Of a stretch of DNA of 64,000 nt, positions 1 to 64,000 are shown piece by piece; within the stretch, counting starts at the first letter, position 1; every line of letters starts with the position of its first letter. The position numbers were made by a program, and so were the translations under genes. The stretch lies in the sequence record NC_025447.1; one strand, written 5' to 3'. The notes under the pieces are model-generated. The model was not told the DNA's origin, did no database searches, and was given only the letters and a program-made list of their open reading frames with translations.

Positions 1-3000
1 AGCACTATTAAGTGTTGAGCTACCAGAAATATTAGCACTAGAAGCAGTAATAGTTCCAGAATCAACTTGTATACCACCAGCAACAACCTGAATTCCACCA
101 GCATTAACTGTTAGTTTACCAGCAGTATTCAATGTATTTGAAACTGTTGTTGCACCAGTTAAAGTTGTAGTGCCAGTTACACCTAAGTTACCAGAAATAG
201 ATGGACTACCTGTAATGTTACCAGTAGTTAGTATCAAATCAGTACCTACGGTAGTGGAGCCAGTACTTTCTAGTGTTACACCGACGATGTTTGCAGAACT
301 TAGGTTAATAGTACCATCAACAGTTAAGTTACCTTGAACGGTTGCATCACCTAGAGAAGTTAATGTCTTCACAGACACATCAGTTGTGCTAAGATCAATA
401 ACACCCGCAGTTAGTGTTCCAGATACTGCTAAATTACCAGTAATCGCGGTATTTTTAGTAATGGATACATTTTCTGCCGCTGAAGTAATAGAACCAACAG
501 TAAGTACACCACCAACAGTTGCGTTATTAGTTACATTTAGAGCAGTTCCAACACCAGATAGTGTTGCTGACCCACCAGTAATTGCACCTGAGATTGAAGC
601 TGTTGCTGCTGAAACATCACCAGAAACTACTGCATTTGTTGCATTTAGAGCAGACACTGTAACTTCAGTACTTTGAACTTTAGGTAGAACGTTGATACCT
701 TCTGCACTACTAACTGTAATAATACCAGTACTTGTTAGAGATTTAACAGATACATCAGCACCACTTAAATCAACTGTACCAGAAACAACAAGATCTCCAC
801 CAATATTTGCTCCAGCGGTAGTAGTAATGGATTTTGCACTTACATCAGTTGTGCTCAAATCAATTGCACCTGGTGTTACTGTACCAGAAACTGTTAGGTC
901 ACCAGTAATAGATGTATTATTGGAAATAGATACACCATCAACGTTACTAATTGTTGGGGTTTCTACAGAAACTGCTTTAACTTTACCTGAAGAAGTTACG
1001 TCAGCTACGGTAGATGCACCAGTAACATTCAAATTAGTAATATTTGCAGTTGTTGAACCAAGGGTTGCAATAGTTGCATCAGTACTTTGAAGTTTAGGTA
1101 GAACACTACTAATTGTGGATTCATTACTAACAATTGCACCAGTACTAGTTAAAGATTTGACAGTAACATCAGCCGTAGTAAGATCTACTGTACCATTAAC
1201 AGTTAGGTTACCACCAATAGTTGCACCAGCAGTAGTAGTAATGGATTTAGCATTAACATCAGTTGTTGCTAGATCGATAGAGCCTGGAATAACTGCACCA
1301 GTAACAGTTAGGTCACCAGTTACATTTGTATTATTGGAAATAGTGACACCACTTGCATTTGAAATGGTTGGGGTAACCAACGATGCAGTTGTAGTTTCAC
1401 CAGTTACAGTTAAAGTTGACCCAACTAGAACAGATGAGCTTGAGTAAATTGTACCCAAATTAGCAGATCCGGTAACAGTTATATCATCAGCATTAACAGT
1501 AGTTGCCGTTATGGTAGTACTATTAAGTACTGGAAGTACGTTAGCATTAACAAGATCATTACTTTTAACAATACCAGAAGTAGTTAATGATTTAACATTA
1601 AGGTCGGCTGCTGATAAATCAAAAGAGCCTTGAACTACTAAATCACCACCAATAGTTGCACCAGCAGTAGTAGTGATTGATTTAGCATTAATATCGGTAG
1701 TGCTCAAGTCTAGAGAACCAACAGTTAAGCTACCAGTAATATCAACATTTTCTGTAAAGTTAGTATTACCACTAATAGTTGGTGCAGTCAGAGTTGTTGC
1801 ACTAATATTAGTACCGTTAATTGTTTGCCCACTTACAGTTCCACTCGCAGTGATAGTAGGGGCCGTTACTTCAGTAGATGCACTAATTGTTGGTGCAGAT
1901 ACAGAAGTTGTACCAGTAATAGAACCAGAACTTACTGAACCAGCGGATAATGCACCAGAAAGAGTTGCAGTTGTACCAGCAATATCACCAGTAACAGTTA
2001 GTTTAGCACCCACGGTAGTGTTACCAGTACTTTCAAGTGTTGCACCTTTAATATTTGCTGCCGCGACAACAGAATTAGGTGTTAGATCCTGCCCACTAAC
2101 ATCAACAGTTAGTCCAGTTACTGTTCCAGTAAATTCAACATCATTAAGAATTGCTTTACCACCAACTTGTAGGAATGGTGTACCTGGAGCTTGTGTTTCG
2201 TTACCAGTAATAGTTAGGTAATCTAGTTTGTTTAGACCGTTACCAGTAATACCATAAGTGGAAAGAGAAGCGTTACCGAAAGTTGCTGTTTTAAGAACGT
2301 TCAATGTAGAAGGAGAAACGACTTCTGATTGAACTTCGTTAGGTAGAATAACTGTTGGGCGTTGACCTGGTGCAGTATATCCAAAACCTAGTTTCACTGC
2401 CGCATCTTGACTATTTTGACCTAAGCTGATAGCTTTAAAGGATGCAGTACTGTTATAACCAGTAATATTAGAACCAAGAGTAACACCACCAACTAATGAA
2501 GTTACACCAGTAACGTTCAAAGATACTGCATTAATATCGTCTAGTTGGAACGTTCCACCAAGAAGACCAGAAACATTAATGTTATTAAAATTAGCAGTAC
2601 CAGTACTTTCGATATTTGGAATAGTTGCAGTTCCGGTTACTTCAAAGTCAGCAACTTTAGTTTTTCCTTTTTGAACTTCTAATAGTGGTGTGTCTGGTGA
2701 TTGTGTATTGTTACCAGAAACTGTTAGATAATCTAATTTGTTTAGACCATTACCAGTAATACCATAAGAAGATAATGACGCATTACCAAAAGAAGCAGAG
2801 GTCAATACTGTCAAGTTTGCAGGTGACATTAGCTCGGACTGAATTTCGTTTTGTAGAATAACAGTTGGGCGTTTACCAGGAGCAGTGTAAGGGAAGCTTA
2901 ATCTGAAGGTTTGTGATTCAGAGTTAGAACCAATACGAATGTCTTTAAAAGTAGCAGTACTGTTAATACCAGTTACGTTAGCACCGAAAGTTACTGCACC

Positions 3001-3612
3001 TTGTTGGTTAGATGCACCAGTAACGTTCAATGTTACTGCATTTAAGTCAGATAGATTAAACTCACCACCAAGTGTACCACTAATTGTCACATCGTTAAAT
3101 GTAGCAGTACCAGTACTACTAATATCTGTTGTACTTACATTAGTAATTTCTGCGGTATTAGCAGTAATTTTATCAAATGCAGCAGTAGTCCCAACATCAG
3201 CAGTAATATTACCTTTAAATGCTGTTGTTTCAGCAACTTCTAAGTTTTTAACTTTAGTTGCTTGTAGAGTGGTTGTACCAGCAGTTTGTGTAAAATCAGA
3301 ACCAACTGATACAGTACCGTTAAAGGTAGCGTTTGAATTAATTGTTGCTGTATCAGACCCGACAACTGCACTACCGATTGTAGTATTACCCTCAACACCA
3401 AGACCACCAGAAAGTGTTGCTTTGCCACCTACATCTAAAGTAGATGTAATGTTGGCAGTTGATGATTCAATGGCAGTAAAAGTTGCATTTGCAAAAGTTA
3501 CAGTACCATTTACAGTTAGGTTATTGTTGAAAACAGCATTTCCTTTGACTAAAAGATCCTTACCAACCGTACCAGCACCAGTAATATCTAAGTCAGTTTT
3601 TATTGAGTACAT
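1..3612 (-). CDS. Large repetitive tail fibre/adhesin-like virion protein (>=1204 aa, runs off the left edge)
   Basis: Manual translation: GGAGG RBS, ATG at 3612, MYSIKTDLDITGAGTVGKDLLVKGNAVFNNNLTVNG..., open to base 1. Thr/Gly/Val/Ser-rich with internal repeats. The + strand ORFs listed here are its antisense shadows. Confidence 0.8.
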   Translation of the reverse strand, partial: MYSIKTDLDITGAGTVGKDLLVKGNAVFNNNLTVNGTVTFANATFTAIESSTANITSTLDVGGKATLSGGLGVEGNTTIGSAVVGSDTATINSNATFNGTVSVGSDFTQTAGTTTLQATKVKNLEVAETTAFKGNITADVGTTAAFDKITANTAEITNVSTTDISSTGTATFNDVTISGTLGGEFNLSDLNAVTLNVTGASNQQGAVTFGANVTGINSTATFKDIRIGSNSESQTFRLSFPYTAPGKRPTVILQNEIQSELMSPANLTVLTSASFGNASLSSYGITGNGLNKLDYLTVSGNNTQSPDTPLLEVQKGKTKVADFEVTGTATIPNIESTGTANFNNINVSGLLGGTFQLDDINAVSLNVTGVTSLVGGVTLGSNITGYNSTASFKAISLGQNSQDAAVKLGFGYTAPGQRPTVILPNEVQSEVVSPSTLNVLKTATFGNASLSTYGITGNGLNKLDYLTITGNETQAPGTPFLQVGGKAILNDVEFTGTVTGLTVDVSGQDLTPNSVVAAANIKGATLESTGNTTVGAKLTVTGDIAGTTATLSGALSAGSVSSGSITGTTSVSAPTISASTEVTAPTITASGTVSGQTINGTNISATTLTAPTISGNTNFTENVDITGSLTVGSLDLSTTDINAKSITTTAGATIGGDLVVQGSFDLSAADLNVKSLTTSGIVKSNDLVNANVLPVLNSTTITATTVNADDITVTGSANLGTIYSSSSVLVGSTLTVTGETTTASLVTPTISNASGVTISNNTNVTGDLTVTGAVIPGSIDLATTDVNAKSITTTAGATIGGNLTVNGTVDLTTADVTVKSLTSTGAIVSNESTISSVLPKLQSTDATIATLGSTTANITNLNVTGASTVADVTSSGKVKAVSVETPTISNVDGVSISNNTSITGDLTVSGTVTPGAIDLSTTDVSAKSITTTAGANIGGDLVVSGTVDLSGADVSVKSLTSTGIITVSSAEGINVLPKVQSTEVTVSALNATNAVVSGDVSAATASISGAITGGSATLSGVGTALNVTNNATVGGVLTVGSITSAAENVSITKNTAITGNLAVSGTLTAGVIDLSTTDVSVKTLTSLGDATVQGNLTVDGTINLSSANIVGVTLESTGSTTVGTDLILTTGNITGSPSISGNLGVTGTTTLTGATTVSNTLNTAGKLTVNAGGIQVVAGGIQVDSGTITASSANISGSSTLNSA
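2200..3120 (-). repeat. 510-bp (170 aa) internal duplication in the large fibre gene
   Basis: ATCTAGTTTGTTTAGACCGTTACCAGTAATACCATAAG at 2221 vs ATCTAATTTGTTTAGACCATTACCAGTAATACCATAAG at 2731. Confidence 0.85.
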
Positions 3613-3710
3613 TTATACCCTCCATTATAACCTTGTTAATATGTATATATTTAGTTTTATTATGCTGTTATCCAACAATTAATATGTTATTTGACAAAAG
3701 CAAATATAAT

Positions 3711-3750
3711 AAAAACCAGACTTATTTAGAACAAGTCTGGTTAATTTTTT
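3711..3750 (-). terminator. Intrinsic terminator after the 298-aa gene
   Basis: 10-bp stem AACCAGACTT/AAGTCTGGTT flanked by A and T tracts. Confidence 0.7.
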
Positions 3751-16050: not shown

Positions 16051-19000
16051 TTACTTAACTAATAATATATTTTTAATATCATTACCACTAACTTGTAGAC
16101 TATCAGTGTATACTGAAAGATCTATAGTGTAACTATTTTGTGTGTAACGTTTTAACATATCATAATTACCTAAATTAATTCCATTGAAAGAATATGTAGT
16201 ATTAAGTTTAAAATCATGTTCTGCACTATACATTACACCACGGAGTAAATTATTTGCATTTCTAACTTCAACTTTTTCATATCCAATCGATATAATATCA
16301 TTCATGTTTGCGGCTGAACCGGATAAAACATTATTTCTAATACTATAAGGACTTATTGATTTAGGTTGAGAAACATAGGTTGTATTTTCTTCACTAATGG
16401 TTGTGATGTTAGTAACAGTACCACCAACAACACCGATATACATACCGTCAACCATTGGGAATCCATAAACCCATATCCCTTCATTATTTCTAAACGGTTG
16501 AATAACACTTGAATCATATTCGATAACGTTGATTTCTAAACTATCAGTCATTTTAGTTCTTGCCAATTCACTAAGAACTCCCGCACCCGTAATTGGTAAG
16601 TTATAACCGTTATCGATAGTAATTCCATCAACATCAAATATTTCATTAGAGATTATCCAAACGTCAACGTCATCTGGTGTTATTCCGTCATTGTACTTAC
16701 CACCATTTAAAGTAGTATCGTAGAAAACATCATAATTAATTACATCAATGGTGTAATTTCTATTTTGTTCATACAATTTAATACCATTCTTGACAAATTC
16801 AGGGTCAGCAAATGTTCTAACACGAACAATGTTCAATGCTAGAGGCTGTACTGGCTCATTTTGTTGTGCAAGAGTGATGTTATCATAACGGAGAACTGCA
16901 CCAGTACTCTCATCAATCAATTCAATCGTTTCCTTACCTGTATTTCTTACAGTGAATAGGATCGGAGTTGTATTGTTTTTGATGTTAGATACACGCAAGA
17001 TTGTTTCCCATGTGTGATTTTGATATCTCACAAAATCTTCACCATCAGGAGTGAAAATCATCACCTTATCACCATCAGATAGGTCATTGTCAACTATTTC
17101 TGCTTCAGTTAAGCTATTAATAGATCTCACACGATAGAAATATTTTTCATCAAACTTCGATGTTGTTTTATTAATATCATTTTCAATCTTAGCATATGAA
17201 GGAATACTTACAATTGCTTCTGTATGTTTATATGGATTGATAATTGCCATACCTTCAGTTTGATATCTGCTGTTATCACGTAATTGTACAAGAGATACAT
17301 TGTCAAACCCATATCCATCAACTGTAAATCTAATTTGACCTACATCACGCCCAGAAGGGTTTATGTCAGATATATCCACAATATAAGGATCAACTTCATC
17401 ATCTTTAACTTCCCATTTTATTGAAGAAGTTTGAGATTCCAATGCTAGGTTATCAAATGCATTCATATCATTGAAGTACTTAGCTTCAGTAATACTATCA
17501 AGTATATATTGATAATCAGAATACATTGGATTATTTTGATCTAGTGGTAAATCATCAAGATTTATTTCAGCTAGTTCAACCATTTCACCATTTGTGATAA
17601 AATAATCTTCCATGAAATCATCAATACTTTGTTCATCAGGTATACTTTGATATACACCGTTAACATTTAAGTAAACATATTTTCGTGGAATCATTGTAAT
17701 TGCATAGATATCAATTGGGGTCTTACTAAGAATCTCTTCAGCTTTTTCGTACTTATCAGTAGCGTCTTTGTCGAATAACCCTCTCATACCTGCTAATACG
17801 TGAATAGCATCAGTATAGAAACGGGTATCACCACCTACTTCATCATAACGATAAACATATACACCATACTCAACTTCAAGTTTAACTTTTACTTCATAGT
17901 CTGATGCGTCAGGATTTTTATCTTTAATTAATGAAATGTATTTTTGATACAATTCACTGCTTATTTCAAAATATCCATAGTTATAATCATTACTAGAAGA
18001 AAAGCCTAATGGAAGTCTAGTACTAGGATTGTCATTATAAGTAAGTCCACTAAATCCACATCCAACTTCATCGTGAATTTTCTCATCACTTATATCTTTA
18101 TAAAGTTTCAAACGGTTTGCCAATGTGTTATACTGAACATATTGTCTAAGGTCAGTAAACATATCGTTATGCGTTGATTCTTTATAAACACGTTCCAATG
18201 TAGCAGTGAATTCATCAGTTGCTTCTAAATCTTCCGCATGGTCTTTATACCACTGGTTAACGCCATATGCTGTTCCTAGTGTTACATCCAATTCTGGATA
18301 GTAGATTTGCATTTGATAAGCAATAAGAAGATCGAAAGTTTCTTCACTATATTCTGGGAAAGAATATATATAACGTTGTAATTCATAGTTACTAACAGCA
18401 TCCTTTTCATTGGATTGATATTTGTTATTAACACTTACTAATTCATTTATGCTTGCCAAATCTTCATTTGGTTTACACTGAATATTATCATAATGCATAA
18501 TAATATCAATTTCTTGGAATCTTCTATTTGGTGTAACGAAATCACTTGGTAGTGAACCTACCTGTTCCCATTTTTGGGTAATTTCATTAAATTGAGCGTA
18601 CTCATAATCCCAAATATCTTTTTCAGTTTTGATCCAAGAACCGTCAACGAAAATATATCCATTAGGATCTAAATCATTACATAGACCTTTTATTAAATCA
18701 TCATCAGATGTCTTTTGCTCTATTTGTGAACGAATTTTAGTTCTATAAGGTTTAACTTCTTCAAAATATTCAACAATTTGATTAATCAAATTATCGTTTG
18801 AATAGTTTTGAACTAATGATTGTTCCAAACCAACAATATAGATATATGATGTTTTAAATACCCAATCCACAACACTTTGTTCAACATGTACATATTTGAC
18901 CATATCAAAAACAATTTCGCTTTGATGTAAATCGAAAGAATTTTTGAGTAAAGCTAGTGCTTTACGAACGTTGATTTCACGATTGCTTAGTGATCCATTA

Positions 19001-22000
19001 TCATTATGAACACTATAATCTGCGTAAAGCATATCATTGAGTTCAACTGTACTGTTTTCACGACCAATCGCTTTCCAATAAATTGAATCGCGTGATTGTG
19101 ATTTAATATACAATGTCCAAATGTTTTCACTATCGGTAACTCTGATAATATCGCCAACTTGGTAGTTTTTAGTATTAGCATCTTCTAAGCTTGACTCTTG
19201 TGTATAAGTCGTGTTACTATCATACCCAACATCATACCAATCAGCATATGACCAGTACTGAGTCATGTCCAATGAAGTTCCCAGTGATTCAACATAATCA
19301 GATTGTTTAATCATTTTATGTTGACCCTCACCTTTGTTCTCTAACGTTATAGTAACAACACTACCCGCGTTTGCTGGACTATTCATTAACTGAATATATC
19401 CATTTTCGTCGAAGTGAATAAAATAAACAGCACTAGAAGTTAATGGATTTGGTAGATATCCACTAGTACTTAAAATAACAGCGTCATTTTCTTTAAATTT
19501 ATCACTTTCAACTGCAATAACTAATTCATTATTGTAAGACAATACACGGAAAGAAACTTCATTCGGATTAACTTCAGTGGTTTTAACATTAAACACATCT
19601 TCCATAACAACACTATTAGTGGTTATGTTTTGTGACCTATAATAATTATTAGCACTTTCTACAAAGTTTCTACGAGCTTCTATAACATTTTGGAACCAAG
19701 TTTTGTTTGAACCTAAACCGTTATCAACATCTGGATATAATAAATTAATCACAGAACCTGATTCAGTTGTTTCTTGACCAATTAGTGAGTTCCACATTGA
19801 ATCCCAAATTAGTGGGTTAAAGTTATAGCTGTCACCTTCTTTACATAGTTGATACTGGTCATGTTTAACAACTTCAGTACTATCCATGTAATAAGAAACA
19901 GTTAAAATACTGGTATCATCATTCACTTTAAATTGCATATTACTAAGAATAAACGAGTTTTCATTGATTGGAGCGAACCAAGGAATGTTTAGCTGTGTTG
20001 GATCTTTAATAATACGAGCAATGTCAGTACATGATTTTGTTCTGGTATGTAGTGGTGGTACATAAATTGTATCACGTACCCAGAAATAGTATTTTGTCAC
20101 ATAACTATCAGTTGAACTATCATATTCCAAAAATGTACTATAATTATCTTCAAGTGCAGTTCCACTTGGTAGATACATAGTATTATTTTTGTTTTTCTTA
20201 GCAACATCTTTACAGTATTTGTCCCAGTTATATGGCTCAACTGGTGAACAAACCCACTCTAACACATCAATTGTACTATGTGGTAATAAACGACCCCAGT
20301 TGTAACGTTTGTATTCATTGGTTGCATCAATATCAACATTACCGTCTGCGTCATAAATTGCACGAGTATAATCCAAATAAAATGCAGTGCTAGTGTTCCA
20401 CCATACTTGACCAACTTTATCAGCACCCCAAGCCTGGATTAACTCTCCATTACTATTATACTGTGCAGGATCAACTGGTGAAGTATATGTTACGTTTTGC
20501 ATAGCCGCACCTGGAATAACACCATTAATTGGGTCATAAACGTTTAGATATAGCTCAGTAATGTTAGTACGTTCATCATATGTCGTTGGACGATCAAATA
20601 AAGTACTTTGTGGTGCTTTAAAACTATATTTCTTGTCAATGTAAGCTTGACGTTCATCAGTACTGGCAAAACGTGATACATAACGATACAAACGTGGACG
20701 TGTATCTGGATCAGTAAATTCAATATCAATAGAAGTGTCAAATGGAACTACCATAACTTTAGGATCAGAACCAGCAGTATAATATTGACTTTCTACTGTT
20801 AAAGTATCTGGCATAAAGTTAGTTTCATCAACAAAATAATAATAATCACCATCTTCAAGTGGTACATTATCAGTTAAAGTTACTTTACAAAATTGTTCAG
20901 CATACACATCGGTATTTTCAATAGGTGTTATAGAAACCATTTGCACATTAGTATCAACCAATTCAAAAATGTTCCACAAACCATTACCGTCTTTAAACAT
21001 CCACACAGATTCAGGATTTTCACCTTTACCATTAGTATAAGTTATGCGGTCATTATATGCAGTACTGAAATCTTTTGTTGTGTACGATACTTCATCCAAT
21101 GTTACTGGACCAATATCTGGAAGTTGGATGTTTTCACTTCTTCCACTACGCATTGGGAATGAGAACTTACCATTTGGACGTGTAATCCAACGAGGATCTT
21201 TACCCTGCTCACCGAAGTATACAATATGATTACCATTACCATTTGAAGTTGCATTTACATCAAAAGAAACCATTTGAGGTTGTTGTTTAAATTGGTCATT
21301 GATTAGTTTAAATTGAAGGTTTTTCTTACCATCAATATTACCATATGTACCAATTTTAAATGCCCATTCTTGTAATGCTTTATATTCATCAGTGTCATAT
21401 GATTTAGAAACACGAAGTACACGTTCTAAAACTTGGTTAGTACCTTTATCGTGAATGAATCCTTTATAGAAATCAACACGACTAACATCACTGCTAATCA
21501 TACGCTGTAGATAATCACGAGATTGATAACCAATCAAATGGTTTGACAACTCTTGTAATTGTACATCACTTACTGGAGTTTCACTATCATAATAATGTTG
21601 GAAATCCGACACTAATTTTTCAAATGATGGTAGTGTTCCAGCTTCCAAGATAATAAATCCAGGAGCTTGTAGGCGACCAGTCCATGAACCAGTAATATAT
21701 CCATACATTTTAATTAGTTCTTGAATAGAACCATATGTTGGCTGATAAATGTAATCACCAAAAATAGTTTTATCATCAAAAATAACAGCATGTTCATATG
21801 AACACAAACTTAAACGAATCAATGCAATGCGTTTATTAGATTCTAAAGTTCTAACAGTGAAGATATTTCCAATACGAGAAGTTTCAATTTCATATTGGCG
21901 AATACCTTGGTTATTATCATCAAGTAATGACCATACACCACCATTATTTTGCGTAATAGATTGTACTGAACCAAAGTCTGCCCCAAATTTAGCGTTTGCA

Positions 22001-25000
22001 GCACTTGGGGTACAAGAAATAAATTCACCAGTTACTAGAGAATTCTGACTCCAGATCACGAAATCTTTAGCAATAGTGTTCCAATCTTGTTGAGCACCAC
22101 TATCATTTACATCTTCAAAAATCCAACCATGTTCTTTAAGATATTCACCATATCCACAAATAAAAGTATAAACTTCTTGGTAACTATTGAAAACTTTACC
22201 ATATTCAATTGAAGCTTCAGACTTCCATTCATTATAATGAACAACATTACGGTTTTCCAATTTAAGAGTTACTTTTCTACCATTTTTTACGGGAAGTTTA
22301 TATTTAAATTTAGCACCAACTAGATCATATCCATCAATCTGATATGCACTACCATTCCAAGTAATTTTGATCGCACTCATTTGCTCATCACGGATATTAT
22401 TAGAACGAACAAGACCAATGGTTTGGTTTTCTTGTGAAATAAGACCGAAAGATTTAGCATTGAATGTTAGCTGATCTGCTTTAGTAAATCCTCCAATTTT
22501 ATGACCAACATTTATATAAGAAGAACGAACTACATCCCCATACTTGGTGGTAATATTTTTATTTTGATACATCAAATGGTCACTTACAAACATTTGATAA
22601 CCAATTGTTCTTGTGCTATTTTCACCATGAACTACTGTATTTTTATCAAAATTAATACGCTTACGTGTATCACCATAAAGGAATTGTGAACCATCAGTGA
22701 ATACTTCTTTTAAGTTATCATTGCGGGTATCCCAGAAATAGTTAGCAAATTGTGCTGGTTTAGCTTTATACAAAAGCATCATTTGGTCATATGCAAACAA
22801 TGTAGTGTTCATGTATGTAAATTCCATGTCACCCATATCACCATATGTCCAAGGTTCTGCTCTATGATTTAAAGATCCAGACACTAAACCTAAAATTTCA
22901 GGTGCAATATATTCAACCACACAAATATCAATACCAGAAGATGTTTTATTTCCAGTTTTTGTAATTTTGAATGGCTGTACACCAAATCTTTTATATTTGT
23001 CATATTGACCACGACGATCACCAAATAAAATAGTTCCAGTACTGCTATCGCCAATAGTTCCGTCAATATCCCAAAGACCACTAGGAACTAAATCACCTTG
23101 CTCATTCATAACAAGTGCTTCATATACATATACAACATCACTATCACGTTCACCAACTTGAACAGCCGTTGGTTCGTATTCTTGGTTCCACCAAGTTGGA
23201 CGTTGTGTAAAGCCAAACATTTCCCACGGATGGGTAGCTGGGCGATATGTACCATATTGGTCAGTGTAAATGGCACGCCATGAACCACGTGCAGGAATTT
23301 CAGTACTTTGACCATTAACTACATAATAAGTGCCAGTATAGTTCCAAGTTCTCCAATTGTTAGGATCATAATCATGTGTACTATTACTGATACCATTAGT
23401 TGCGGTGAAGTTAATGTATCCACGTAGTAATAATGTTTGTTTCTCTTCAGCACTATATTCAGTTTTAGTGAAATATGGTGTAGGGAAAAGGTCATCACTA
23501 TTCAATACTGGTACGTAATCAACATCTTTGAATTTATTATCAATACTATTAAAAATTCTATTTTCTAATTCATATACAACATCATCCATTTTATCAACAC
23601 CATTGATAACACGGTATGCTTTGGAAATAATACCAGTATGACTGATGTTATAACAGCTTGGTTTACTACCAGCAGTGAGGAATGTCGCTTTTTCTGGTAC
23701 ATATGCTTGAAGAATACCTAAGAACTGTGGTGTTGGTGGTATAAATGCACGAATGAATCCAGAAGTACTTCCAACATTATCATAATAGAATGGGAATGAA
23801 CTATCACGTCCCATATTAATAGTAGTTAAAATTGCATCAACAATGTTTGCAGCACTATTTTGTAAAAAGTCTGATGGATTTTCATCATACATACGAAGCA
23901 TTTGTGTATTAAATTTATTAATGAATCTAAAATATTCAGATTGCATAAACATAGTTGCTTCAAATAAATCAATATCTTCATTTGCAGTATGTGCCATCAA
24001 TGGAAGCATAGATGCTTCATTTTGGATAATTTTAGTACCTACGCCATTATTAACCAATCCTTTAGCCAAACGTTCTTCATAGTCATTGAAATCATCAGAA
24101 GAACCACGTGTAATGTTCTTTTGAATAATATCCTGAAAATGTAAAGTGTAGTCACCTTGGTTAATGTATATAATATTGGAATTGTATGGGTTATTTTGTA
24201 AGTTAATTGGAACTTCATATGCACCTAATTCTTTATTAGGAGTTACAGTACTGCTATAAGTTCTAATTTGAATAACTGAATCTTCATCCAAATCTACAGT
24301 GCTATCTAAGGTGATACTTTGAACTTGACCTTTTGATACATTTTTGGTATATTTTGATACATCAACACCATCAACAACAACTTCAATTATGTCAGAATCA
24401 TTATCTAAAACTTTTTGTGCTAATTCGAATGTGTGGTCATATTTTACAATCTGAACACCATCACCAGTGATTGGATGCCAGTCTAGATAAGTTTCGCGGT
24501 CTGCTTTATAGTACTGATAGGTTCTATCAACTTCAATAACATATGCATACATACCATCAACTGGTTCTTTAAAAACTTCCATATCATAAACAGTACTGAA
24601 TACACGATACATATCAGTACGTTTGACTTGTGGAGTTTGTTTTACAAATTGTTTAGAGTACTCTTCTGAACGAACCCAATCGGTTTGAAGATTCATTTCA
24701 TTATTTTCATCAATAATGTTATAATAGTATAAACCATCAATTTCAACTTCTTTTCCAAGATGGTCATAGGTATAACGTTGGGATTGTAAAAAGTTTTCAT
24801 AAATGTAATAATTATAATCACCAAGTTCAATGTTATATCCATATACACTATCAGTTGCATAGTTGTAATTTATTTTAAAACCAAACAACTCTGAACCTTT
24901 AAAGTTACTGGATGGATATGTAGTACTGTTGTCAAGTTTGATACCATTACGATCATAAAGTTGGAATTTAGGGAATATGTTAACACTAGTTTTTGATTGT

Positions 25001-26022
25001 GCACGAACCCACAAAGAACCATTCCAGTACATAGAACTGTTACCATACTCATTACCTTTGGTGATTAGAACAACATCACCATCTTGAGGTTCACCACTTG
25101 GGCGTGATTCGGTTTCTTCTTCTGGATCTAATGCCAAACCATAAACACGAGTACCATCCTGCATTTTTTTGACATATACATTATAAATTCTATTATTTTC
25201 ACCATTGTTACCAATACTGGTGAATAGAATACGCATACCATCTTGTGGAATAATACCATCAATACGGATGCCACTATTAATATCTTTTTGTACGATATCT
25301 TCAGGTTTGATTATATCTGAGAATAGATCGACAGTTCCACGGAATTTTGTACCGTAGTTAATTAGTTCAATATTTTTATTATATTCGATAATTGGAGCAC
25401 GGGCACGAATAAAGCGAGAATCTTGCATTAATTCTTCAGTTAAAATTGAACCATCTTCTAAAGTTTCACCTAAAGTATACCAAAAGTTTTGTAGTGACCA
25501 TGTATTACCATTAAGTGCACCACGTTCCATTACAATGTAATCAGGTGAAGTAATATTATAAGAGTTTTTAGTATCCCAAAGATATGAGCTAAAATTGTTC
25601 ATTTTATTTGGGTTAATAGCTGGAGTCCATGCATAAAACTTACCGTTGAACAAACGGCTTTCATTATCGGTTAGTGCTCCATAATGATTCATGTATCCAA
25701 CTAGATCATCATAAAATTGAATTGAACGAATTGTCGAATCATCATTTTTTGAGACGTAAGCAGTGGACAACTGATAAAGTTGACGTGCTACAGTACTTTC
25801 ATGTAAGAAGATATTACCAGCAGCGGCAGGAGAACCCATATCACCAATATAGCCGTCAACTAATTCGTTTTCAGCCGGATTAAACCATTGTTGAATAACA
25901 TCATCACTGACTTTTTGAATATCTTCTAAGCCTTGCATCCACTCAGGCAATCTTTTAATAAAAAGCTTCTTCTGTACTGCTTCAGCCATCTGTGTAGGTT
26001 GAAACTTAAAATTATTAGTCAT
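16051..26022 (-). CDS. Giant (~3320 aa) baseplate wedge-type structural protein
   Basis: Uninterrupted ORF directly downstream of the gp6-like gene; GGAG RBS before ATG 26022 (MTNN); CATAAATA upstream. The gp7-like role is inferred from position only. Confidence 0.55.
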   Translation of the reverse strand: MTNNFKFQPTQMAEAVQKKLFIKRLPEWMQGLEDIQKVSDDVIQQWFNPAENELVDGYIGDMGSPAAAGNIFLHESTVARQLYQLSTAYVSKNDDSTIRSIQFYDDLVGYMNHYGALTDNESRLFNGKFYAWTPAINPNKMNNFSSYLWDTKNSYNITSPDYIVMERGALNGNTWSLQNFWYTLGETLEDGSILTEELMQDSRFIRARAPIIEYNKNIELINYGTKFRGTVDLFSDIIKPEDIVQKDINSGIRIDGIIPQDGMRILFTSIGNNGENNRIYNVYVKKMQDGTRVYGLALDPEEETESRPSGEPQDGDVVLITKGNEYGNSSMYWNGSLWVRAQSKTSVNIFPKFQLYDRNGIKLDNSTTYPSSNFKGSELFGFKINYNYATDSVYGYNIELGDYNYYIYENFLQSQRYTYDHLGKEVEIDGLYYYNIIDENNEMNLQTDWVRSEEYSKQFVKQTPQVKRTDMYRVFSTVYDMEVFKEPVDGMYAYVIEVDRTYQYYKADRETYLDWHPITGDGVQIVKYDHTFELAQKVLDNDSDIIEVVVDGVDVSKYTKNVSKGQVQSITLDSTVDLDEDSVIQIRTYSSTVTPNKELGAYEVPINLQNNPYNSNIIYINQGDYTLHFQDIIQKNITRGSSDDFNDYEERLAKGLVNNGVGTKIIQNEASMLPLMAHTANEDIDLFEATMFMQSEYFRFINKFNTQMLRMYDENPSDFLQNSAANIVDAILTTINMGRDSSFPFYYDNVGSTSGFIRAFIPPTPQFLGILQAYVPEKATFLTAGSKPSCYNISHTGIISKAYRVINGVDKMDDVVYELENRIFNSIDNKFKDVDYVPVLNSDDLFPTPYFTKTEYSAEEKQTLLLRGYINFTATNGISNSTHDYDPNNWRTWNYTGTYYVVNGQSTEIPARGSWRAIYTDQYGTYRPATHPWEMFGFTQRPTWWNQEYEPTAVQVGERDSDVVYVYEALVMNEQGDLVPSGLWDIDGTIGDSSTGTILFGDRRGQYDKYKRFGVQPFKITKTGNKTSSGIDICVVEYIAPEILGLVSGSLNHRAEPWTYGDMGDMEFTYMNTTLFAYDQMMLLYKAKPAQFANYFWDTRNDNLKEVFTDGSQFLYGDTRKRINFDKNTVVHGENSTRTIGYQMFVSDHLMYQNKNITTKYGDVVRSSYINVGHKIGGFTKADQLTFNAKSFGLISQENQTIGLVRSNNIRDEQMSAIKITWNGSAYQIDGYDLVGAKFKYKLPVKNGRKVTLKLENRNVVHYNEWKSEASIEYGKVFNSYQEVYTFICGYGEYLKEHGWIFEDVNDSGAQQDWNTIAKDFVIWSQNSLVTGEFISCTPSAANAKFGADFGSVQSITQNNGGVWSLLDDNNQGIRQYEIETSRIGNIFTVRTLESNKRIALIRLSLCSYEHAVIFDDKTIFGDYIYQPTYGSIQELIKMYGYITGSWTGRLQAPGFIILEAGTLPSFEKLVSDFQHYYDSETPVSDVQLQELSNHLIGYQSRDYLQRMISSDVSRVDFYKGFIHDKGTNQVLERVLRVSKSYDTDEYKALQEWAFKIGTYGNIDGKKNLQFKLINDQFKQQPQMVSFDVNATSNGNGNHIVYFGEQGKDPRWITRPNGKFSFPMRSGRSENIQLPDIGPVTLDEVSYTTKDFSTAYNDRITYTNGKGENPESVWMFKDGNGLWNIFELVDTNVQMVSITPIENTDVYAEQFCKVTLTDNVPLEDGDYYYFVDETNFMPDTLTVESQYYTAGSDPKVMVVPFDTSIDIEFTDPDTRPRLYRYVSRFASTDERQAYIDKKYSFKAPQSTLFDRPTTYDERTNITELYLNVYDPINGVIPGAAMQNVTYTSPVDPAQYNSNGELIQAWGADKVGQVWWNTSTAFYLDYTRAIYDADGNVDIDATNEYKRYNWGRLLPHSTIDVLEWVCSPVEPYNWDKYCKDVAKKNKNNTMYLPSGTALEDNYSTFLEYDSSTDSYVTKYYFWVRDTIYVPPLHTRTKSCTDIARIIKDPTQLNIPWFAPINENSFILSNMQFKVNDDTSILTVSYYMDSTEVVKHDQYQLCKEGDSYNFNPLIWDSMWNSLIGQETTESGSVINLLYPDVDNGLGSNKTWFQNVIEARRNFVESANNYYRSQNITTNSVVMEDVFNVKTTEVNPNEVSFRVLSYNNELVIAVESDKFKENDAVILSTSGYLPNPLTSSAVYFIHFDENGYIQLMNSPANAGSVVTITLENKGEGQHKMIKQSDYVESLGTSLDMTQYWSYADWYDVGYDSNTTYTQESSLEDANTKNYQVGDIIRVTDSENIWTLYIKSQSRDSIYWKAIGRENSTVELNDMLYADYSVHNDNGSLSNREINVRKALALLKNSFDLHQSEIVFDMVKYVHVEQSVVDWVFKTSYIYIVGLEQSLVQNYSNDNLINQIVEYFEEVKPYRTKIRSQIEQKTSDDDLIKGLCNDLDPNGYIFVDGSWIKTEKDIWDYEYAQFNEITQKWEQVGSLPSDFVTPNRRFQEIDIIMHYDNIQCKPNEDLASINELVSVNNKYQSNEKDAVSNYELQRYIYSFPEYSEETFDLLIAYQMQIYYPELDVTLGTAYGVNQWYKDHAEDLEATDEFTATLERVYKESTHNDMFTDLRQYVQYNTLANRLKLYKDISDEKIHDEVGCGFSGLTYNDNPSTRLPLGFSSSNDYNYGYFEISSELYQKYISLIKDKNPDASDYEVKVKLEVEYGVYVYRYDEVGGDTRFYTDAIHVLAGMRGLFDKDATDKYEKAEEILSKTPIDIYAITMIPRKYVYLNVNGVYQSIPDEQSIDDFMEDYFITNGEMVELAEINLDDLPLDQNNPMYSDYQYILDSITEAKYFNDMNAFDNLALESQTSSIKWEVKDDEVDPYIVDISDINPSGRDVGQIRFTVDGYGFDNVSLVQLRDNSRYQTEGMAIINPYKHTEAIVSIPSYAKIENDINKTTSKFDEKYFYRVRSINSLTEAEIVDNDLSDGDKVMIFTPDGEDFVRYQNHTWETILRVSNIKNNTTPILFTVRNTGKETIELIDESTGAVLRYDNITLAQQNEPVQPLALNIVRVRTFADPEFVKNGIKLYEQNRNYTIDVINYDVFYDTTLNGGKYNDGITPDDVDVWIISNEIFDVDGITIDNGYNLPITGAGVLSELARTKMTDSLEINVIEYDSSVIQPFRNNEGIWVYGFPMVDGMYIGVVGGTVTNITTISEENTTYVSQPKSISPYSIRNNVLSGSAANMNDIISIGYEKVEVRNANNLLRGVMYSAEHDFKLNTTYSFNGINLGNYDMLKRYTQNSYTIDLSVYTDSLQVSGNDIKNILLVK

Positions 26023-29567: not shown

Positions 29568-30332
29568 TTAATCCTTTAATAATATGTTAAAATTATCATA
29601 AAAGTACTTTTTTAGTACCGAAATATAGTCTTCATTATACTTCAATCGAAGTAAATTTATTCCATTCTCGGTGCAGTACGTGTTTTTAATTTTATCATTG
29701 TGTTGAGTTTGTTTTAGTGATTTTGTTCCACCCCAATGCTCTGAACATTGAAAATGTTGTTCACCATCATATTCGATACACAAGTTTAAATCTTCAATAT
29801 AAAAATCAAATGGCAATGTTAAAATATTCTTACAATTATCAAATCTCTTTTCTCTAACATATTTAAATGAAGATAATATATTTTCTATATCTGATACTGC
29901 CTTGGATTGAGTACTATCTCTCATACATTTTTCACACCCGTATCTACTATTCAAGTGATTATCAGGTCGCTGGTAGAATATACCATGTATTGGACAAATT
30001 ATTGATATATGTGTTTTATTATTAACATAATTAGCCATACTATAATCAAATTTATTTTTAAATTTAAAATTGGCTTTTTTCTTGAAATTTAAAAAATTAT
30101 GTGGACTTTTTTGCCTATTTGTATTATATTCAATAGAACATTTCATGCATCCTTTGCCACATGTATGGTCATTTGGTGTTTGTAGAAAAAATCCATGTTT
30201 TGCACAGCCAATCCATACTTTTGTTTTAGCATTATGATATTTAACCATACTATAGTCATATCGTATACCATGAACTTTTATCGCATTGGTTACAAATTTA
30301 TATTTTGTCGATCTAGTGGTTGCATATTTCAT
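29568..30332 (-). mobile_element. Free-standing homing-endonuclease-like gene (DUF723-type Cys repeats + PD-(D/E)XK/Vsr-like nuclease)
   Basis: Two YDYSMxxY...CxxHGxFxQxPxxH...GCxxC repeats; C-terminal LPFDFYIEDLNLCIEYDGEQHF; lies between gp25 and gp6. Confidence 0.75.
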
Positions 30333-41976: not shown

Positions 41977-42069
41977 AATTCCTCACCAAACTATTTGTTA
42001 TCAAAATATTTATAGATTAGTTATTTGCAATATTTTAAGTACTTAATGAATATTTTTATAAAAATAGTG

Positions 42070-42096
42070 AGACAACTTTAAAGTTTGTGCTATAAT
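42070..42096 (+). promoter_or_regulatory. RGACAA-N15-TATAAT promoter firing into an ORF-free region
   Basis: AGACAA 42070-75, TG-C-TATAAT with the hexamer at 42091-96, A-rich upstream. Confidence 0.65.
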
Positions 42097-42102
42097 GTTT
42101 GT

Positions 42103-42586
42103 TGTAGTAATGACAATCCTGTTGAATGCAGAAATGCATATAAATTAGAACCTGATCCTATCGAAAATGTAGATGGCAGATGAGCAGTTCAACAGTGCGA
42201 TGAGCAAAAGAAACCCGTTAGATGTGGGCATAGTTTGAACCCCTCACGGCAATGCGGCTCAATAAAGAACTCCGATAAGCATACAGAGAGTTCCTCGATA
42301 GACATATAAGGATCGCACCTTACCAGATTTGCTAAGGGAGTTTATTAAGTGATTTTAATAAACAGCCTGAAGTTTGATTGTATAGACTTTCAGGTGAGTG
42401 TCAGGATGATTAAGACTGACGACCGTTGCACATGACTGCGATAGAGAGAAACAGAGCAACCCGCTTTCGTTCTTAATATATTTTTAAGAAATTCGCAATA
42501 CAATAAATGCTGAAACCATCAGCGTCAAGAAATAGAGACTTCATTGTCTCTTTTTTATTGTCTTCATTCCCCTGCGGGGGGATGAA
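42103..42586 (+). ncRNA. Candidate large structured non-coding RNA of unknown family
   Basis: No ORF >=60 aa, higher GC than flanks, about a dozen visible helices including long-range ones, GAAA tetraloop, terminator-like hairpin with T tract (see findings). Confidence 0.6.
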
Positions 42587-42812
42587 AATGTCCTCAACAA
42601 ATCCCGTCAAGTATTAAATCTTTTAAAGTTCTTTATAATTAATTTAATTAAATGAATATGAGTTACGTAGTAACGAATATTCTTCAGCTAACGAATGAAA
42701 TGAGTTAGATGAATCCAATAATATTAAAATTAATCCTTTCATAATTCAATTCAAATAATTCTGTAGTTTAAAACCAAAAAAAACCAGCAACAATGTGCTG
42801 GCTATATGAAAA

Positions 42813-48245: not shown

Positions 48246-48334
48246 ATCAAAAATCGCACTTTTTAAAGCTTTTAAAAAAGGCGATTTTATTCAGTACTAA
48301 ATAATATCATACTTTATACGAATGTAATATATCT

Positions 48335-49858: not shown

Positions 49859-49905
49859 TCTGTATGTTGAAGTACAGATATTTCAGTACTTAAAGGAGAG
49901 AACGA

Positions 49906-51112: not shown

Positions 51113-52288
51113 ATGTCACAACTACTAAATGAATCCAAATGGGTAGCAGTAAAAGAGAAACTAGTTGAAGGTCTACAGGGTACTCGTAAGTCTGTAATGG
51201 AAACTGTTCTTGATAACCATCGTAAAGTTATGCTAACTGAATCCGCAACTTCTGGTGCAACTACCGCTGGTAACATCGCTACTCTAAACAAAGTGATTCT
51301 ACCAATTATGCGTCGTGTAATGCCAACCGTTATTGCTAACGAAATCATCGGTGTTCAACCTATGACTGGTCCAGTTGGTCAGATCCACACCCTACGTGTA
51401 CAATATGCTGATAACGCACCTGGTGTAATCGCTGGTGAAGAAATGCTTTCTCCATACAAAATCGCTAAATCTTACTCTGGTGATCTAAATGCGGATAATA
51501 GCAACCCACAAGCTGCTCCTACTAGCCAACTAGAAGGTACTATGGGTCGTCGCGTTAACATCCGTATTCTACGTGAAACTGTTGAAGCGAAATCTCGTCG
51601 TCTATCTGCACGTTGGACTGTTGAATCTGCACAAGATGCTCAATCCCAACATGGTGTTGACGTTGAAGCAGAACTAATGGCTGCAATCGCTCAAGAAGTT
51701 ACTGTAGAAATCGACCAAGAGCTACTAAGCCGTCTACGTGCACTACCTGGTGCTGCTGCTGTAACTTATGACCAATCTAAAGTTACTGGTGTTGCAACCT
51801 TCGTTGGTGATGAGCACGCTGCTCTAGCTACTCTAATTAACCGTCAAGCAAACGAAGTTGCTCGTCGTACTAAGCGTGGTGCTGCAAACTGGGCTGTTGT
51901 TTCCCCAACTGCACTAACCATTCTACAATCTGCTACTACTTCTAGCTTTGCACGTACCACTGAAGGTACTTTTGAAGCACCAACTAACGTTAAGTTTGTA
52001 GGTACTCTAAACAGCACTATGCGTATTTTCGTTGATACCTATGCTAGTGATGCAGAAGATATTCTAATTGGTTATAAAGGAAATGCGGAAACTGATGCTG
52101 GTGTATTCTATTGCCCATACATCCCACTAATGGCTTCCGGTACTGTAATGGACCCTAACACTGGGGAACTCGTTACAACTTTCTTAACCAGATACGGGTA
52201 TGTTCAGTTGACCGATAGCACCAGTTCACTAGGTAACGCTGCGGACTACTACAGCAAAATCGCTATCAAAAACGTTACTTTCATGTAA
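51113..52288 (+). CDS. gp23: Major capsid protein
   Basis: IIGVQPMTGPVGQIHTLR, VEAKSRRLSARWT, EIDQE and FYCPYIPL motifs; extreme codon bias. Confidence 0.97.
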   Translation: MSQLLNESKWVAVKEKLVEGLQGTRKSVMETVLDNHRKVMLTESATSGATTAGNIATLNKVILPIMRRVMPTVIANEIIGVQPMTGPVGQIHTLRVQYADNAPGVIAGEEMLSPYKIAKSYSGDLNADNSNPQAAPTSQLEGTMGRRVNIRILRETVEAKSRRLSARWTVESAQDAQSQHGVDVEAELMAAIAQEVTVEIDQELLSRLRALPGAAAVTYDQSKVTGVATFVGDEHAALATLINRQANEVARRTKRGAANWAVVSPTALTILQSATTSSFARTTEGTFEAPTNVKFVGTLNSTMRIFVDTYASDAEDILIGYKGNAETDAGVFYCPYIPLMASGTVMDPNTGELVTTFLTRYGYVQLTDSTSSLGNAADYYSKIAIKNVTFM

Positions 52289-56825: not shown

Positions 56826-56847
56826 TTAGTACTAAAATATATTAAAT

Positions 56848-61465: not shown

Positions 61466-61466
61466 T

Positions 61467-61766
61467 ATGAAAATTAAAATGATTAATGATTACGTTCTTG
61501 TTCGACAAATTGAAGCACAGAATAAAAGTACTGGTGGTATTATTCTAGGTAATGTTGAACCACCATGTATTGGGATGGTAATTTCCGTTGGTCCAGGTAA
61601 AATTCTTCCGAACGGACAACTTGCAGAACATAATATTAAAGAAGGTGATATGGTTGTGTTTGGTCGTTCATCTTTGAACACACCTCTGACTGAAGATCTT
61701 GGTGGTGGTGAAGATACATATTATGTAATGAAAATCGAAGAGATTTTTGGTAAGAAAAATGGCTAA
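61467..61766 (+). CDS. groES: GroES-like co-chaperonin
   Basis: DYVLVR, KSTGGIIL mobile loop, VISVGPGK, IKEGDMV; GGAGG RBS before ATG 61467. Confidence 0.92.
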   Translation: MKIKMINDYVLVRQIEAQNKSTGGIILGNVEPPCIGMVISVGPGKILPNGQLAEHNIKEGDMVVFGRSSLNTPLTEDLGGGEDTYYVMKIEEIFGKKNG

Positions 61767-62484
61767 AAAGAAATTTATTCCATTTTGGATGGTCCCTGCT
61801 CACTGGGGACTTTCTGGAAAGGCAAAAGAGATAGCTAAAGCATACTACTACAATGATGATTATGAAGCTGATATGAAAGTTGCTGAATTGACATATCTAA
61901 CTCCATATGAAGTTGAACTGGCCCAATTGGATATTAAAAAGAAATATAGCGTAATTGGAGATTTGGAATATCTAATTACAGTACTTGATGTTGAACTAAA
62001 ATATTCTAAAATTACTCGTGAACAGTATAATGTTAAAGTTCTTGATGCAAAACTAAGTACTGGTTCTATTACTGAAAAAGAATATGATATGGAAATCATT
62101 GAGTTAATGCCAGACGGTGATGAAAAAAGGCTTAAGGCTATAGAATTTGCATATCGTTATGAAGAAATCACTCAAAGTGAATATTCAAAGGAGATATATA
62201 CACTTCGAAAAGAGCCTTGGATTGATTTGGATGTGGTTCTTGATCCTGAAACAAATGAAGTTGAGTTTGTTTTTGACTATAACGAATATTTCTGGAAAAA
62301 GTTGAAAGCCGAAGGTCATCCAGGTAATGATGAAGAAGAAATCATAGATAACTTTGTTAGAGACTTGGGGCGTAAACTTGCTACGGATGATTTCAGTGAT
62401 GATTACGACACAAAGCTAGTGAGTGCGAACGAAGGATTAGACAAGCTACCTGGTTTACCTGAAGGATTTCGTTCATATAGATAA
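61759..62484 (+). CDS. Hypothetical protein
   Basis: ORF overlapping the groES stop. Confidence 0.6.
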   Translation: MAKKKFIPFWMVPAHWGLSGKAKEIAKAYYYNDDYEADMKVAELTYLTPYEVELAQLDIKKKYSVIGDLEYLITVLDVELKYSKITREQYNVKVLDAKLSTGSITEKEYDMEIIELMPDGDEKRLKAIEFAYRYEEITQSEYSKEIYTLRKEPWIDLDVVLDPETNEVEFVFDYNEYFWKKLKAEGHPGNDEEEIIDNFVRDLGRKLATDDFSDDYDTKLVSANEGLDKLPGLPEGFRSYR

Positions 62485-62490
62485 AAATAA

Positions 62491-62520
62491 AAAAGGAGAG
62501 CATTTGCTCTCCTTTTCTTT
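62491..62520. terminator. Bidirectional terminator
   Basis: AAAAGGAGAGC-ATTT-GCTCTCCTTTT. Confidence 0.85.
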
Positions 62521-62529
62521 TGTAAAATA

Positions 62530-63219
62530 TTAAACCAATGCTGGGATGTATTGGAAAAGTTTAACACCGAAATCCCCTGCTGCATCAGCAGACTGGGAAC
62601 GTAGATAAACTTCAGTAACACCATCTTTAGCAAGTAGCGGAACACCAGTTAGATCATCAATTAGTAGACGGCCTTCTTCGGATTCAGTACTTGGTACACC
62701 TTGTGGTGATTTAAGATCTTTGTTAAAGACACCAGCACGTTCAACTAGGAAGGTTACAACGGAAGCATCAGCAATACTAACTGAACCTGCACTCAATACA
62801 CCATCAGGTGCGTTGGTGAAACCAGTAACTGGAAATACTTCAAGACCATTACCTGCGATGTTAGAGGTAGCGATGATAACCGCACGTTGTTGAACAACAT
62901 CGACAATACGTTTAACGTTAGTTTGTGCTGCATAAGATGCATTGTAATCAGCTTCTAGTGTGCCAAGAACAAATGCAGTTCCATCAATACGTTTGATACC
63001 TTTATCATTTAGATATGCTAGAATTTCTTCTGGAATATCAGTGTTTAGAAAACGTTGTAGACCAGCATAAGAAGAAACTGCACCAGTAACTAGAACGTTT
63101 ACGTTTCCTAGCTTACTGATAGCAATGGATGCTAGGGCGTTAGTGCCACAAAAGTAACCTAGAATACGTTCAAAGGAATAACCATTGATACGTTCAAAAG
63201 AAGTATTAGTATATGACAT
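62530..63219 (-). CDS. Abundant virion protein (paralogue 2)
   Basis: Capsid-like codon bias; QQRAV and ERAGVFNK shared with the neighbour. Confidence 0.5.
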   Translation of the reverse strand: MSYTNTSFERINGYSFERILGYFCGTNALASIAISKLGNVNVLVTGAVSSYAGLQRFLNTDIPEEILAYLNDKGIKRIDGTAFVLGTLEADYNASYAAQTNVKRIVDVVQQRAVIIATSNIAGNGLEVFPVTGFTNAPDGVLSAGSVSIADASVVTFLVERAGVFNKDLKSPQGVPSTESEEGRLLIDDLTGVPLLAKDGVTEVYLRSQSADAAGDFGVKLFQYIPALV

Positions 63220-63233
63220 AATCTATCCTCCTA

Positions 63234-63833
63234 TTATAGTTGAACAGGAAGAGCAGCACGTACTTTAATTGCTACAGCAGTAGATGCACCTGCATCACCA
63301 ACACCATCAGTACCTTGACTTACGAAAGTTTTGGTACGGAAAACTTTAGCTTGAGCGATAGACTTAGCTAGGTCAACAGTTGGATCAACTGGAGCAGGAC
63401 ATGCTGAACCAGGACGAACTTCTTGCTTGTTAAATACGTCTTGACGTTCACAGATGAAAGTCAATGCAACAGAATTAGCACCACCTGCTACATCAGCACC
63501 ACTAGTACCGAACGCAACTACGTTTGGATTAGCATTTTTGAAATCAGCAGGAATAACAACTTCTGAATCAAGAGCTAGTAGAGAGGTAGTAACTAGAACT
63601 GCACGTTGTTGTAGTAGTTGGGTAACCATGAATAGGTTATATTGAGCATTACTTAGAGCAGTTTGATACGCTTCAGCTTGAACATCAGAACCGTCAGAAG
63701 TAACTTTGGTAGTACCTAGTTCAACATCAGTTGGTAGATCGATTACGATGGTAACGAAACCGTTATTACCACCCCACCATTCGCGAGCAACGCTAGACAT
63801 ACCATAGTTACGGTTAAAAGAATTAAGACTCAT
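63234..63833 (-). CDS. Abundant virion protein (paralogue 1)
   Basis: GGAG RBS, GATAAATA upstream; QQRAV and ERQDVFNK. Confidence 0.5.
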   Translation of the reverse strand: MSLNSFNRNYGMSSVAREWWGGNNGFVTIVIDLPTDVELGTTKVTSDGSDVQAEAYQTALSNAQYNLFMVTQLLQQRAVLVTTSLLALDSEVVIPADFKNANPNVVAFGTSGADVAGGANSVALTFICERQDVFNKQEVRPGSACPAPVDPTVDLAKSIAQAKVFRTKTFVSQGTDGVGDAGASTAVAIKVRAALPVQL

Positions 63834-64000
63834 GAAAATCTCCTTGTCAAATTTTGTGCAGGTATATCCTGCTTAAAGTTATTTATCAAAAAATATCACT
63901 AGCATTTAAATTTACTGAGATATTTAATGAATTTCTATGATATTATTTATCAAATCTGGGAAAGTGATTCAAGATGTGCTATAATTATCAATGAAAATCA

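Follow-up and report, generated by a model that had tools for sequence, protein, structure and literature searches.

The genome of Escherichia phage 121Q is filled with copies of a single palindromic word, AGTACT. We find that this excess is selected at the level of the DNA, that it is old, and that it has arisen convergently in unrelated phages of the Enterobacteriaceae. The stretch analyzed here (the window) comprises 64,000 nucleotides of record NC_025447.1, and corresponds to positions 284,533–348,532, i.e. the final 64 kb, of this 348,532-bp Rak2-like jumbo myovirus of the genus Asteriusvirus. An earlier reading made from the letters alone (the sequence-only reading) had estimated some 110 copies of AGTACT in the window, about five-fold more than the 22 or so expected, in several frames and on both coding strands. 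Exact counting gives 118 copies (1.84 per kb), dispersed over positions 1–64,000 in the genes of both strands and in every frame. Dinucleotide-preserving shuffles contain 19.46 ± 4.27 copies, with a maximum of 32 and none of 100 reaching 118. AGTACT is the most over-represented of the 4096 hexamers in the window, with a ratio of observed to expected (O/E) of 6.0 and z = 31. The observation is confirmed. It is also the top hexamer of the complete genome, where there are 903 copies against ~100 expected (9.0-fold). The spacing is near-Poisson, with no periodicity and a mean interval of ~390 bp. We found no publication describing the phenomenon in these phages.

The word has a symmetric, extended form. 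The symmetrized consensus of the 121Q sites is TTC-AGTACT-GAA, with the best form CAGTACTG, which is the top octamer of the genome (194 copies against 4.4 expected, 44-fold). The flanks are symmetric, with C favored 2.7-fold at position −1 and G reduced to 0.45-fold, and carry no information beyond position −4. The sequence-only reading had asked if the sister hexamers AGTACC, GGTACT and TGTACA might be equally enriched. They are not; genome-wide AGTACC/GGTACT are found at 2.1-fold, AGTACA at 1.8-fold and TGTACA at 0.97-fold, compared with 9.0-fold for AGTACT, while GGTACC and CGTACG have zero copies. The one-mismatch neighbors of AGTACT are present at 1.2- to 2.1-fold, with no depletion. Polar signals such as Chi, the FtsK-orienting polar sequences (KOPS) and uptake sequences are not a suitable class for AGTACT, which is palindromic and has half-sites that are unpolar genome-wide, with a single polar stretch that is described below.

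Phages normally avoid restriction targets, removing palindromes to escape restriction. GCGC is absent from the 348-kb genome of 121Q, with 177 copies expected, and the window is devoid of ~26 hexamer palindromes that are rich in GC. The Escherichia coli Chi octamer GCTGGTGG is present 29 times in the genome (18 on the plus and 11 on the minus strand) against 2.4 expected, and this may be a codon effect (GCT-GGT-GG).

Within genes the excess is independent of codon usage. There are 734 coding copies of AGTACT in the genome, compared with 211 ± 13 under a synonymous shuffle that preserves amino acids and codon usage (3.5-fold), and 126 when the order of codons is shuffled (5.8-fold). The enrichment thus persists under the shuffle that the sequence-only reading had proposed as a check. 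The synonymous O/E is uniform along the genome, lying between 2.7 and 4.5, which rules out a gradient from the genome ends. In the window, the sites in phases 0, 1 and 2 number 46, 8 and 14 for minus-strand genes and 29, 5 and 12 for plus-strand genes, with four more in non-coding DNA. All frames contribute to the excess. Ser-Thr pairs are spelled AGT-ACT in 362 of 689 cases, where codon usage predicts 103, and the Val-Leu frame (xxA-GTA-CTx) and the Tyr frame (xAG-TAC-Txx) exceed expectation by 4.5- and 6.2-fold respectively. The dipeptides ST and VL are themselves found at 1.4-fold in 121Q, while the reversed TS and LV are close to 1.0. Maintenance of AGTACT therefore shifts the protein sequence. 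Copies also settle where they cost little, such as promoter spacers, terminator stems and intergenic DNA; the density is 4.6 per kb in non-coding and 2.35 per kb in coding DNA across the genome.

These data bear on the simplest alternative, that AGTACT is a passive by-product of codon usage, amino acid composition, repeats or mutation bias. AGT, ACT and GTA are indeed preferred codons, and part of the copies lie within repeated promoters and terminators. Yet the shuffles, the frame counts and the higher density of non-coding DNA lead us to reject codon usage or repeats as the cause; moreover the flanking contexts of the sites differ from one another, and phage T4, of similar GC content and host, has AGTACT at only 0.75-fold. 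We can give a by-product almost no weight.

The excess is shared by the relatives of 121Q. In homologous 42–48-kb regions of BF17, RaK2, Serratia phage BF and XbC2, AGTACT is the top hexamer in each, at 6.4- to 8.1-fold, and is strongest in Serratia phage BF. The AGTACT-rich genera are four, Asteriusvirus, Alcyoneusvirus, Eneladusvirus and Mimasvirus. No excess is found in the outgroups T4 (0.75), PA5oct (0.21) and Atu_ph07 (0.45), and PA5oct has no iterated palindrome of its own. A 50-kb sample of E. coli K-12 contains three AGTACT sites, again with no excess, and the sites per kb of 121Q are ~40 times those of this sample. AGTACT thus stands far above composition, Markov and codon-aware null models; it occupies all frames and non-coding DNA and is not a repeat family; and it is a clade-wide trait missing from outgroups and the host sample. 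These are the properties of a highly iterated palindrome.

We examined conservation of the sites in codon alignments of five orthologous genes, which together contain 34 AGTACT sites, using neighboring hexamers of the same phase as controls. The largest of the five is gp582, which encodes a virion protein and occupies 10 kb of the minus strand (window positions 16051–26022). Sites of 121Q are retained in BF17 in 62% of cases compared with 34% for the controls (P = 0.001), and in RaK2 in 32% compared with 18%. Most sites still turn over between genera, while the density is preserved. Gains include switches of serine codon family requiring several base changes, such as TCA-ACA to AGT-ACT. Taken with the shuffles and the distribution over frames, the conservation strongly supports the proposal of the sequence-only reading that positive selection maintains AGTACT as a highly iterated site, similar to highly iterated palindrome 1 (HIP1) of cyanobacteria.

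The same signature is found in unrelated prophages. We searched viral contigs for tight triplets of AGTACT. Most of the other matches were tandem coding repeats and were set aside, but the sites of one provirus contig (G001) are dispersed. It contains 103 copies of AGTACT (9.2-fold) and 30 of CAGTACTG (58-fold), and no GCGC where 42 copies are expected. Its genes include a lambda-family portal, a gpA-type terminase and a gpJ-type tail tip, and it has in common with 121Q only a lysozyme domain and the tail-fiber pair gp508/gp509, at 50% identity. Three sister contigs also bear the signature. In contig G002 the signature begins exactly at the serine-integrase gene, i.e. at the junction of host and prophage; the host flank, which carries genes of the type VI secretion system (Tle3/Tli3) and RimO, is free of AGTACT, and its GCGC is at a normal level. 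The RimO of this flank is 98% identical to that of an Escherichia/Pseudescherichia isolate. A second, more divergent serine-integrase lineage has AGTACT at 14- to 15-fold, giving an overall range in the prophages of 9- to 15-fold. In the synonymous shuffle test the prophage has 94 coding copies compared with 23, and the flank bias resembles that of 121Q, with G at −1 in only 4% of half-sites. The prophages thus share with 121Q the word, its flanks and the complete lack of GCGC.

Several further observations concern these prophages. The palindrome purge of 121Q recurs in them, and G002 contains no Chi octamer. The tail-fiber pair (121Q positions 241,462–244,789) is 40–50% identical to the prophage gene pair, which indicates, as judged from the sequences, that genes of host recognition have been exchanged between very different phages; the identity of these two genes removes them as candidates for a shared DNA reader. 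We found no match to the prophage lineage in the phage collection, in E. coli genomes or in the GTDB species genomes. The nearest annotated relative by terminase, Escherichia phage DCP80, has no AGTACT excess. Its record (PQ671644.1) combines T4-type genes (motA, ndd and two copies of rIIA) with a terminase and structural block of lambda type, and may be a chimeric assembly.

Two unrelated lineages of the same host family thus carry the identical word with identical flanks, and an activity that reads the DNA is therefore very likely. The sequence-only reading had assumed that the phage encodes the reader. Now that unrelated prophages of enterobacteria are seen to have the signature too, a host-linked factor or one carried on a mobile gene becomes more likely, and the core machinery of the jumbo phages less so. 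Our tentative interpretation is that AGTACT is a positively selected word of double-stranded DNA, most likely the recognition site of a two-fold symmetric reader linked to a shared host or mobile gene. Selection acting on the duplex, and not on coding needs, would keep a copy every ~390 bp. A putative DNA-reading protein of two-fold symmetry would recognize the word, with an effect that would scale with the density of AGTACT over the genome, which would in effect tag the DNA as that of a phage. The reader would be supplied by the shared enterobacterial host, or be directed against it, or be carried on a mobile gene, and would stand apart from the T4-like core machinery that the jumbo phages possess.

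One region of the genome bears on what exactly is read. A block of 7,511 bp (121Q positions 161,803–169,314, outside the window) has no ACT on the plus strand, where 114 copies are expected; the next-longest gap lacking ACT in the genome is 459 bp. It contains an array of small early genes in which ACT is missing from the coding strand, and triplets containing CT are low overall. The block is also present in BF17, at 95% identity compared with ~83% elsewhere. The left edge falls inside gp345, and the edges are not simple boundaries of genes, replication or transcripts. The lack of ACT makes AGTACT impossible within the block. In its place AGTACA occurs 41 times against 3.5 expected, in a single orientation (41 to 0), and none of the other ACT-free one-base variants of AGTACT is enriched. 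The word has therefore been kept in the face of a competing constraint, and replacement of the outer T by A is the single change tolerated.

This polarity raises the possibility that the true unit is a strand-specific word, either ACT or WGTACT, that a gp61-like primase, for example, would recognize on RNA or single-stranded DNA, and that the palindrome serves both strands. The single orientation in the block, found in both 121Q and BF17, would fit such a unit, and 121Q encodes a zinc-ribbon primase that resembles T4 gp61. By the biology of T4 primase, one cryptic base plus a five-base primer would add up to six bases. However, the non-palindromic AGTAC is unpolar outside the block (412 in one orientation and 376 in the other), ACT is common on its own, and a reader of the triplet gives no cause for enrichment of the hexamer. 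The edges of the block, which are not simple landmarks of replication or transcription, also weigh against it, and the prophage DNA that was sampled yielded no homologue of the primase. Lambdoid phages typically use the host primase. We consider a strand-specific unit distinctly unlikely.

Other features of genome architecture are associated with the early region. BF17 has a direct terminal repeat of 20.6 kb, corresponding by synteny to ~134.9–155.5 kb of 121Q, a promoter-rich early region with the highest density of AGTACT (6.7 per kb). An unannotated 2-kb stretch at 135,195–137,160, the presumed left genome end, has 20 copies (10 per kb), several of them within the context AGTACTGAATCAC. Just inside the inner edge of the repeat, a block at 155.5–159.5 kb (block A) has no AGTACT and only 6–9 copies of TGTACT. 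We do not count this as a second polar block, since its polarity depends upon those 6–9 copies and no word is absolutely excluded.

Could the word be written without being read? A molecular drive, by which biased repair, conversion or recombination writes AGTACT into DNA that replicates in these hosts, would resemble drives that have been proposed for HIP1 or uptake sequences. The rapid turnover of sites with the density maintained is consistent with this, as is the convergence in unrelated phages that share hosts, and two copies of the word form the stems of terminator hairpins, as uptake sequences do. Yet the one-mismatch neighbors are not depleted, the effect is large for both the hexamer and the octamer, and gains such as TCA-ACA to AGT-ACT require multiple base changes. 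Furthermore the host chromosome beside the prophage has no AGTACT. A drive of this kind therefore seems improbable.

The readers suggested by the sequence-only reading, a phage methyltransferase among them, are no more than possibilities, and its interpretation is supported in part. The 286-amino acid C5 methyltransferase is excluded, as it is DNMT3-like and of CpG type, and its gene is missing from Serratia phage BF. The DNA of RaK2 carries 5-methylcytosine at CpG by bisulfite sequencing, and is cut only by methylation-insensitive enzymes (RaK2 paper). An orphan adenine methyltransferase might instead target AGTACT, so that methylated sites would mark the phage DNA for protection, strand discrimination or timing, and the reader would be a methyl-sensitive process. 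All four jumbo genera rich in AGTACT encode a Dam-type PF05869 methylase with an NPPY motif, which PA5oct lacks, and the resistance of RaK2 DNA to cleavage is in keeping with such a mark. The prophage lineages encode a different, small amino-methylase with an NPPF motif. XbC2 and a 341-kb contig rich in AGTACT carry homologues of it, at 32% and 60% identity respectively. But the two families are unrelated and neither is present in all AGTACT-rich genomes. No NPPF homologue was found in 121Q, BF17, RaK2 or Serratia phage BF, and distant relatives are present in phages without the excess (AGTACT 0 versus 4.1 expected, 0 versus 2.8 and 2 versus 2.2). This family does not track AGTACT, which speaks against it as the reader. 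The characterized PF05869 enzymes methylate GATC, which counts against the other family; nor does a methylation target require enrichment per se, and the C5 enzyme, being CpG-specific and dispensable, lends no help. An adenine methylase is conceivable, but we think it rather unlikely.

The sites might alternatively titrate or recruit a host regulator that has an AGTACT-like core, either SlmA, which mediates nucleoid occlusion, or TrpR. The hosts are all Enterobacterales. The SlmA consensus GTGAGTACTCAC contains the AGTACT core, and requires G1, T2 and a purine at position 3 (PMC3020112), while a sequence containing TTCAGTACTGAA is among the TrpR-regulon promoter predictions of a motif-finding paper (PMC2811016). 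In 121Q there is no full SlmA site. C is preferred at position 3 and G is the least-used flanking base, and GTR-AGTACT is present in 20 of 1,806 half-sites, where ~51 would be expected from base composition or ~33 from the observed flank frequencies. The sequence GAGTACTC has 3 copies in 121Q and none in the prophage. TrpR operators are built upon ACTAGT/CTAG cores with the partner half-site ~8 bp away; in 121Q ACTAGT is not enriched (0.76-fold) and the flanks are uninformative past −4, and the perfect 12-mer was not found in E. coli K-12. We therefore reject both proteins on their flank and core requirements, and view titration or recruitment of either as very improbable.

Returning to a symmetric reader linked to host or mobile gene, a number of results weigh against it. 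Family searches of 121Q gave no match to TetR, ParB, MutH, PF01555 or PF02086, and no nucleoid, packaging or recombination protein, all classes raised by the sequence-only reading, could be tied to AGTACT; the searches identified no reader. In the available sequence there is no DNA-acting gene common to all of the AGTACT-rich lineages. All that unites the jumbo and prophage lineages is a lysozyme domain and the tail-fiber pair, to which an EDM2-like methylase can be added for some of the jumbo phages. The prophage genomes are only partly covered, and the remainder might hold a reader gene common to both. SlmA, the sole known host protein with an AGTACT core, misfits the flanks in the phage. 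Finally, the convergence is the one result from which we infer a host reader. A search with the ScaI fold carries no weight either way, because its control matched nothing anywhere.

Non-coding copies occupy places where the sequence is free to vary. The word abuts early promoter elements of sigma-70 type, as AGTAC-TTGACA, TTGAC-AGTACT and AGTACTG-TATAAT. AGTACTG adjoins the −10 element in 23 of 118 promoter-like matches, and a few more copies abut the −35 element. Such promoter-linked copies are <5% of the 903 sites, too few for a promoter element to explain most of them. Others lie in both arms of terminator hairpins and in intergenic spacers, and promoter, terminator and spacer placements together account for no more than a few per cent of the total. 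AGTACT holds no constant position relative to gene starts or late-promoter motifs. At ~116,000–131,300 of 121Q an array of RCC1-like paralogues is found, each followed by a terminator hairpin with arms from CCAGTACT and AGTACTGG.

Four intergenic sites in the window had been singled out from the sequence, and all do lie between annotated genes. The first (42038–42043) falls in the gap that separates gp594 (endonuclease VII) from gp595, a short way upstream of a candidate non-coding RNA, and the second (48293–48298) is between gp599 and gp600. The third (49885–49890) directly precedes the ribosome-binding site of the scaffolding gene gp602, and the fourth (56828–56833) lies right behind the gp609 stop codon, with the DNA polymerase gene downstream. 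In coding DNA a pair of sites 10 bp apart is found in the long tail fiber gene gp571 (1516–1531). The major capsid gene (51113–52288, plus strand) and the candidate RNA (42,070–42,590) contain no AGTACT, as had been stated, although both gaps are within chance (at 1.84 sites per kb, P ~ 0.11 and P ~ 0.38 respectively). The HNH endonuclease gene gp584 (29568–30332) lies between baseplate genes, is missing from that place in BF17, RaK2, Serratia phage BF and XbC2, and is probably a mobile insertion.

AGTACT can be compared with several known systems. Like HIP1 (GCGATCGC), it is a short palindrome in many-fold excess, found in all frames and in non-coding DNA as the trait of a clade, with a reader or function that is debated. 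Unlike HIP1, it sits in phage genomes purged of most other palindromes, it is AT-rich with no GATC or CG core and no cognate methylase identified, and it recurs in unrelated phages of one host family. Uptake signal sequences and DNA uptake sequences (USS/DUS), together with Chi, are also words whose effect depends on density; they occur in all frames and label DNA as 'own', and inverted pairs of uptake sequences likewise form terminator stems. However, they are asymmetric and strand-polar, where AGTACT is palindromic and non-polar except as AGTACA in the ACT-free block, and we know of no uptake or RecBCD-like reader for it. SlmA sites have the identical central hexamer in the same host family, but the flanks they require are missing from the phage and even disfavored, and there are ~900 copies of AGTACT in the 348 kb of 121Q compared with ~50 SlmA sites in the E. 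coli chromosome (PMC3020112). Sites of the ScaI/Eco255I type are the same hexamer, yet AGTACT is enriched 9-fold in 121Q, which encodes no PF01555-type methylase. The new elements are the convergence in prophages, including a signature that is sharp at the junction, and the survival of the word as AGTACA in the ACT-free block.

Phages that are extreme purgers of palindromes, with GCGC absent and some two dozen hexamer palindromes at zero, thus keep one palindrome at 9 to 15 times chance, and bend codon choice and even protein sequence in order to do so. It is possible, if somewhat doubtful, that AGTACT is an identity tag encoded in the sequence, according to whose density a host-linked or mobile system in Enterobacteriaceae would treat DNA differently, and that unrelated phages, lytic jumbo myoviruses of 350 kb and temperate serine-integrase siphoviruses, have written the same word and flanks independently at a price in altered proteins. 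E. coli infected with 121Q or a relative offers a direct test of the system. If true, it could provide a new principle for the discrimination of phage from host DNA, or point to a new host factor, one exploited or evaded by phages.

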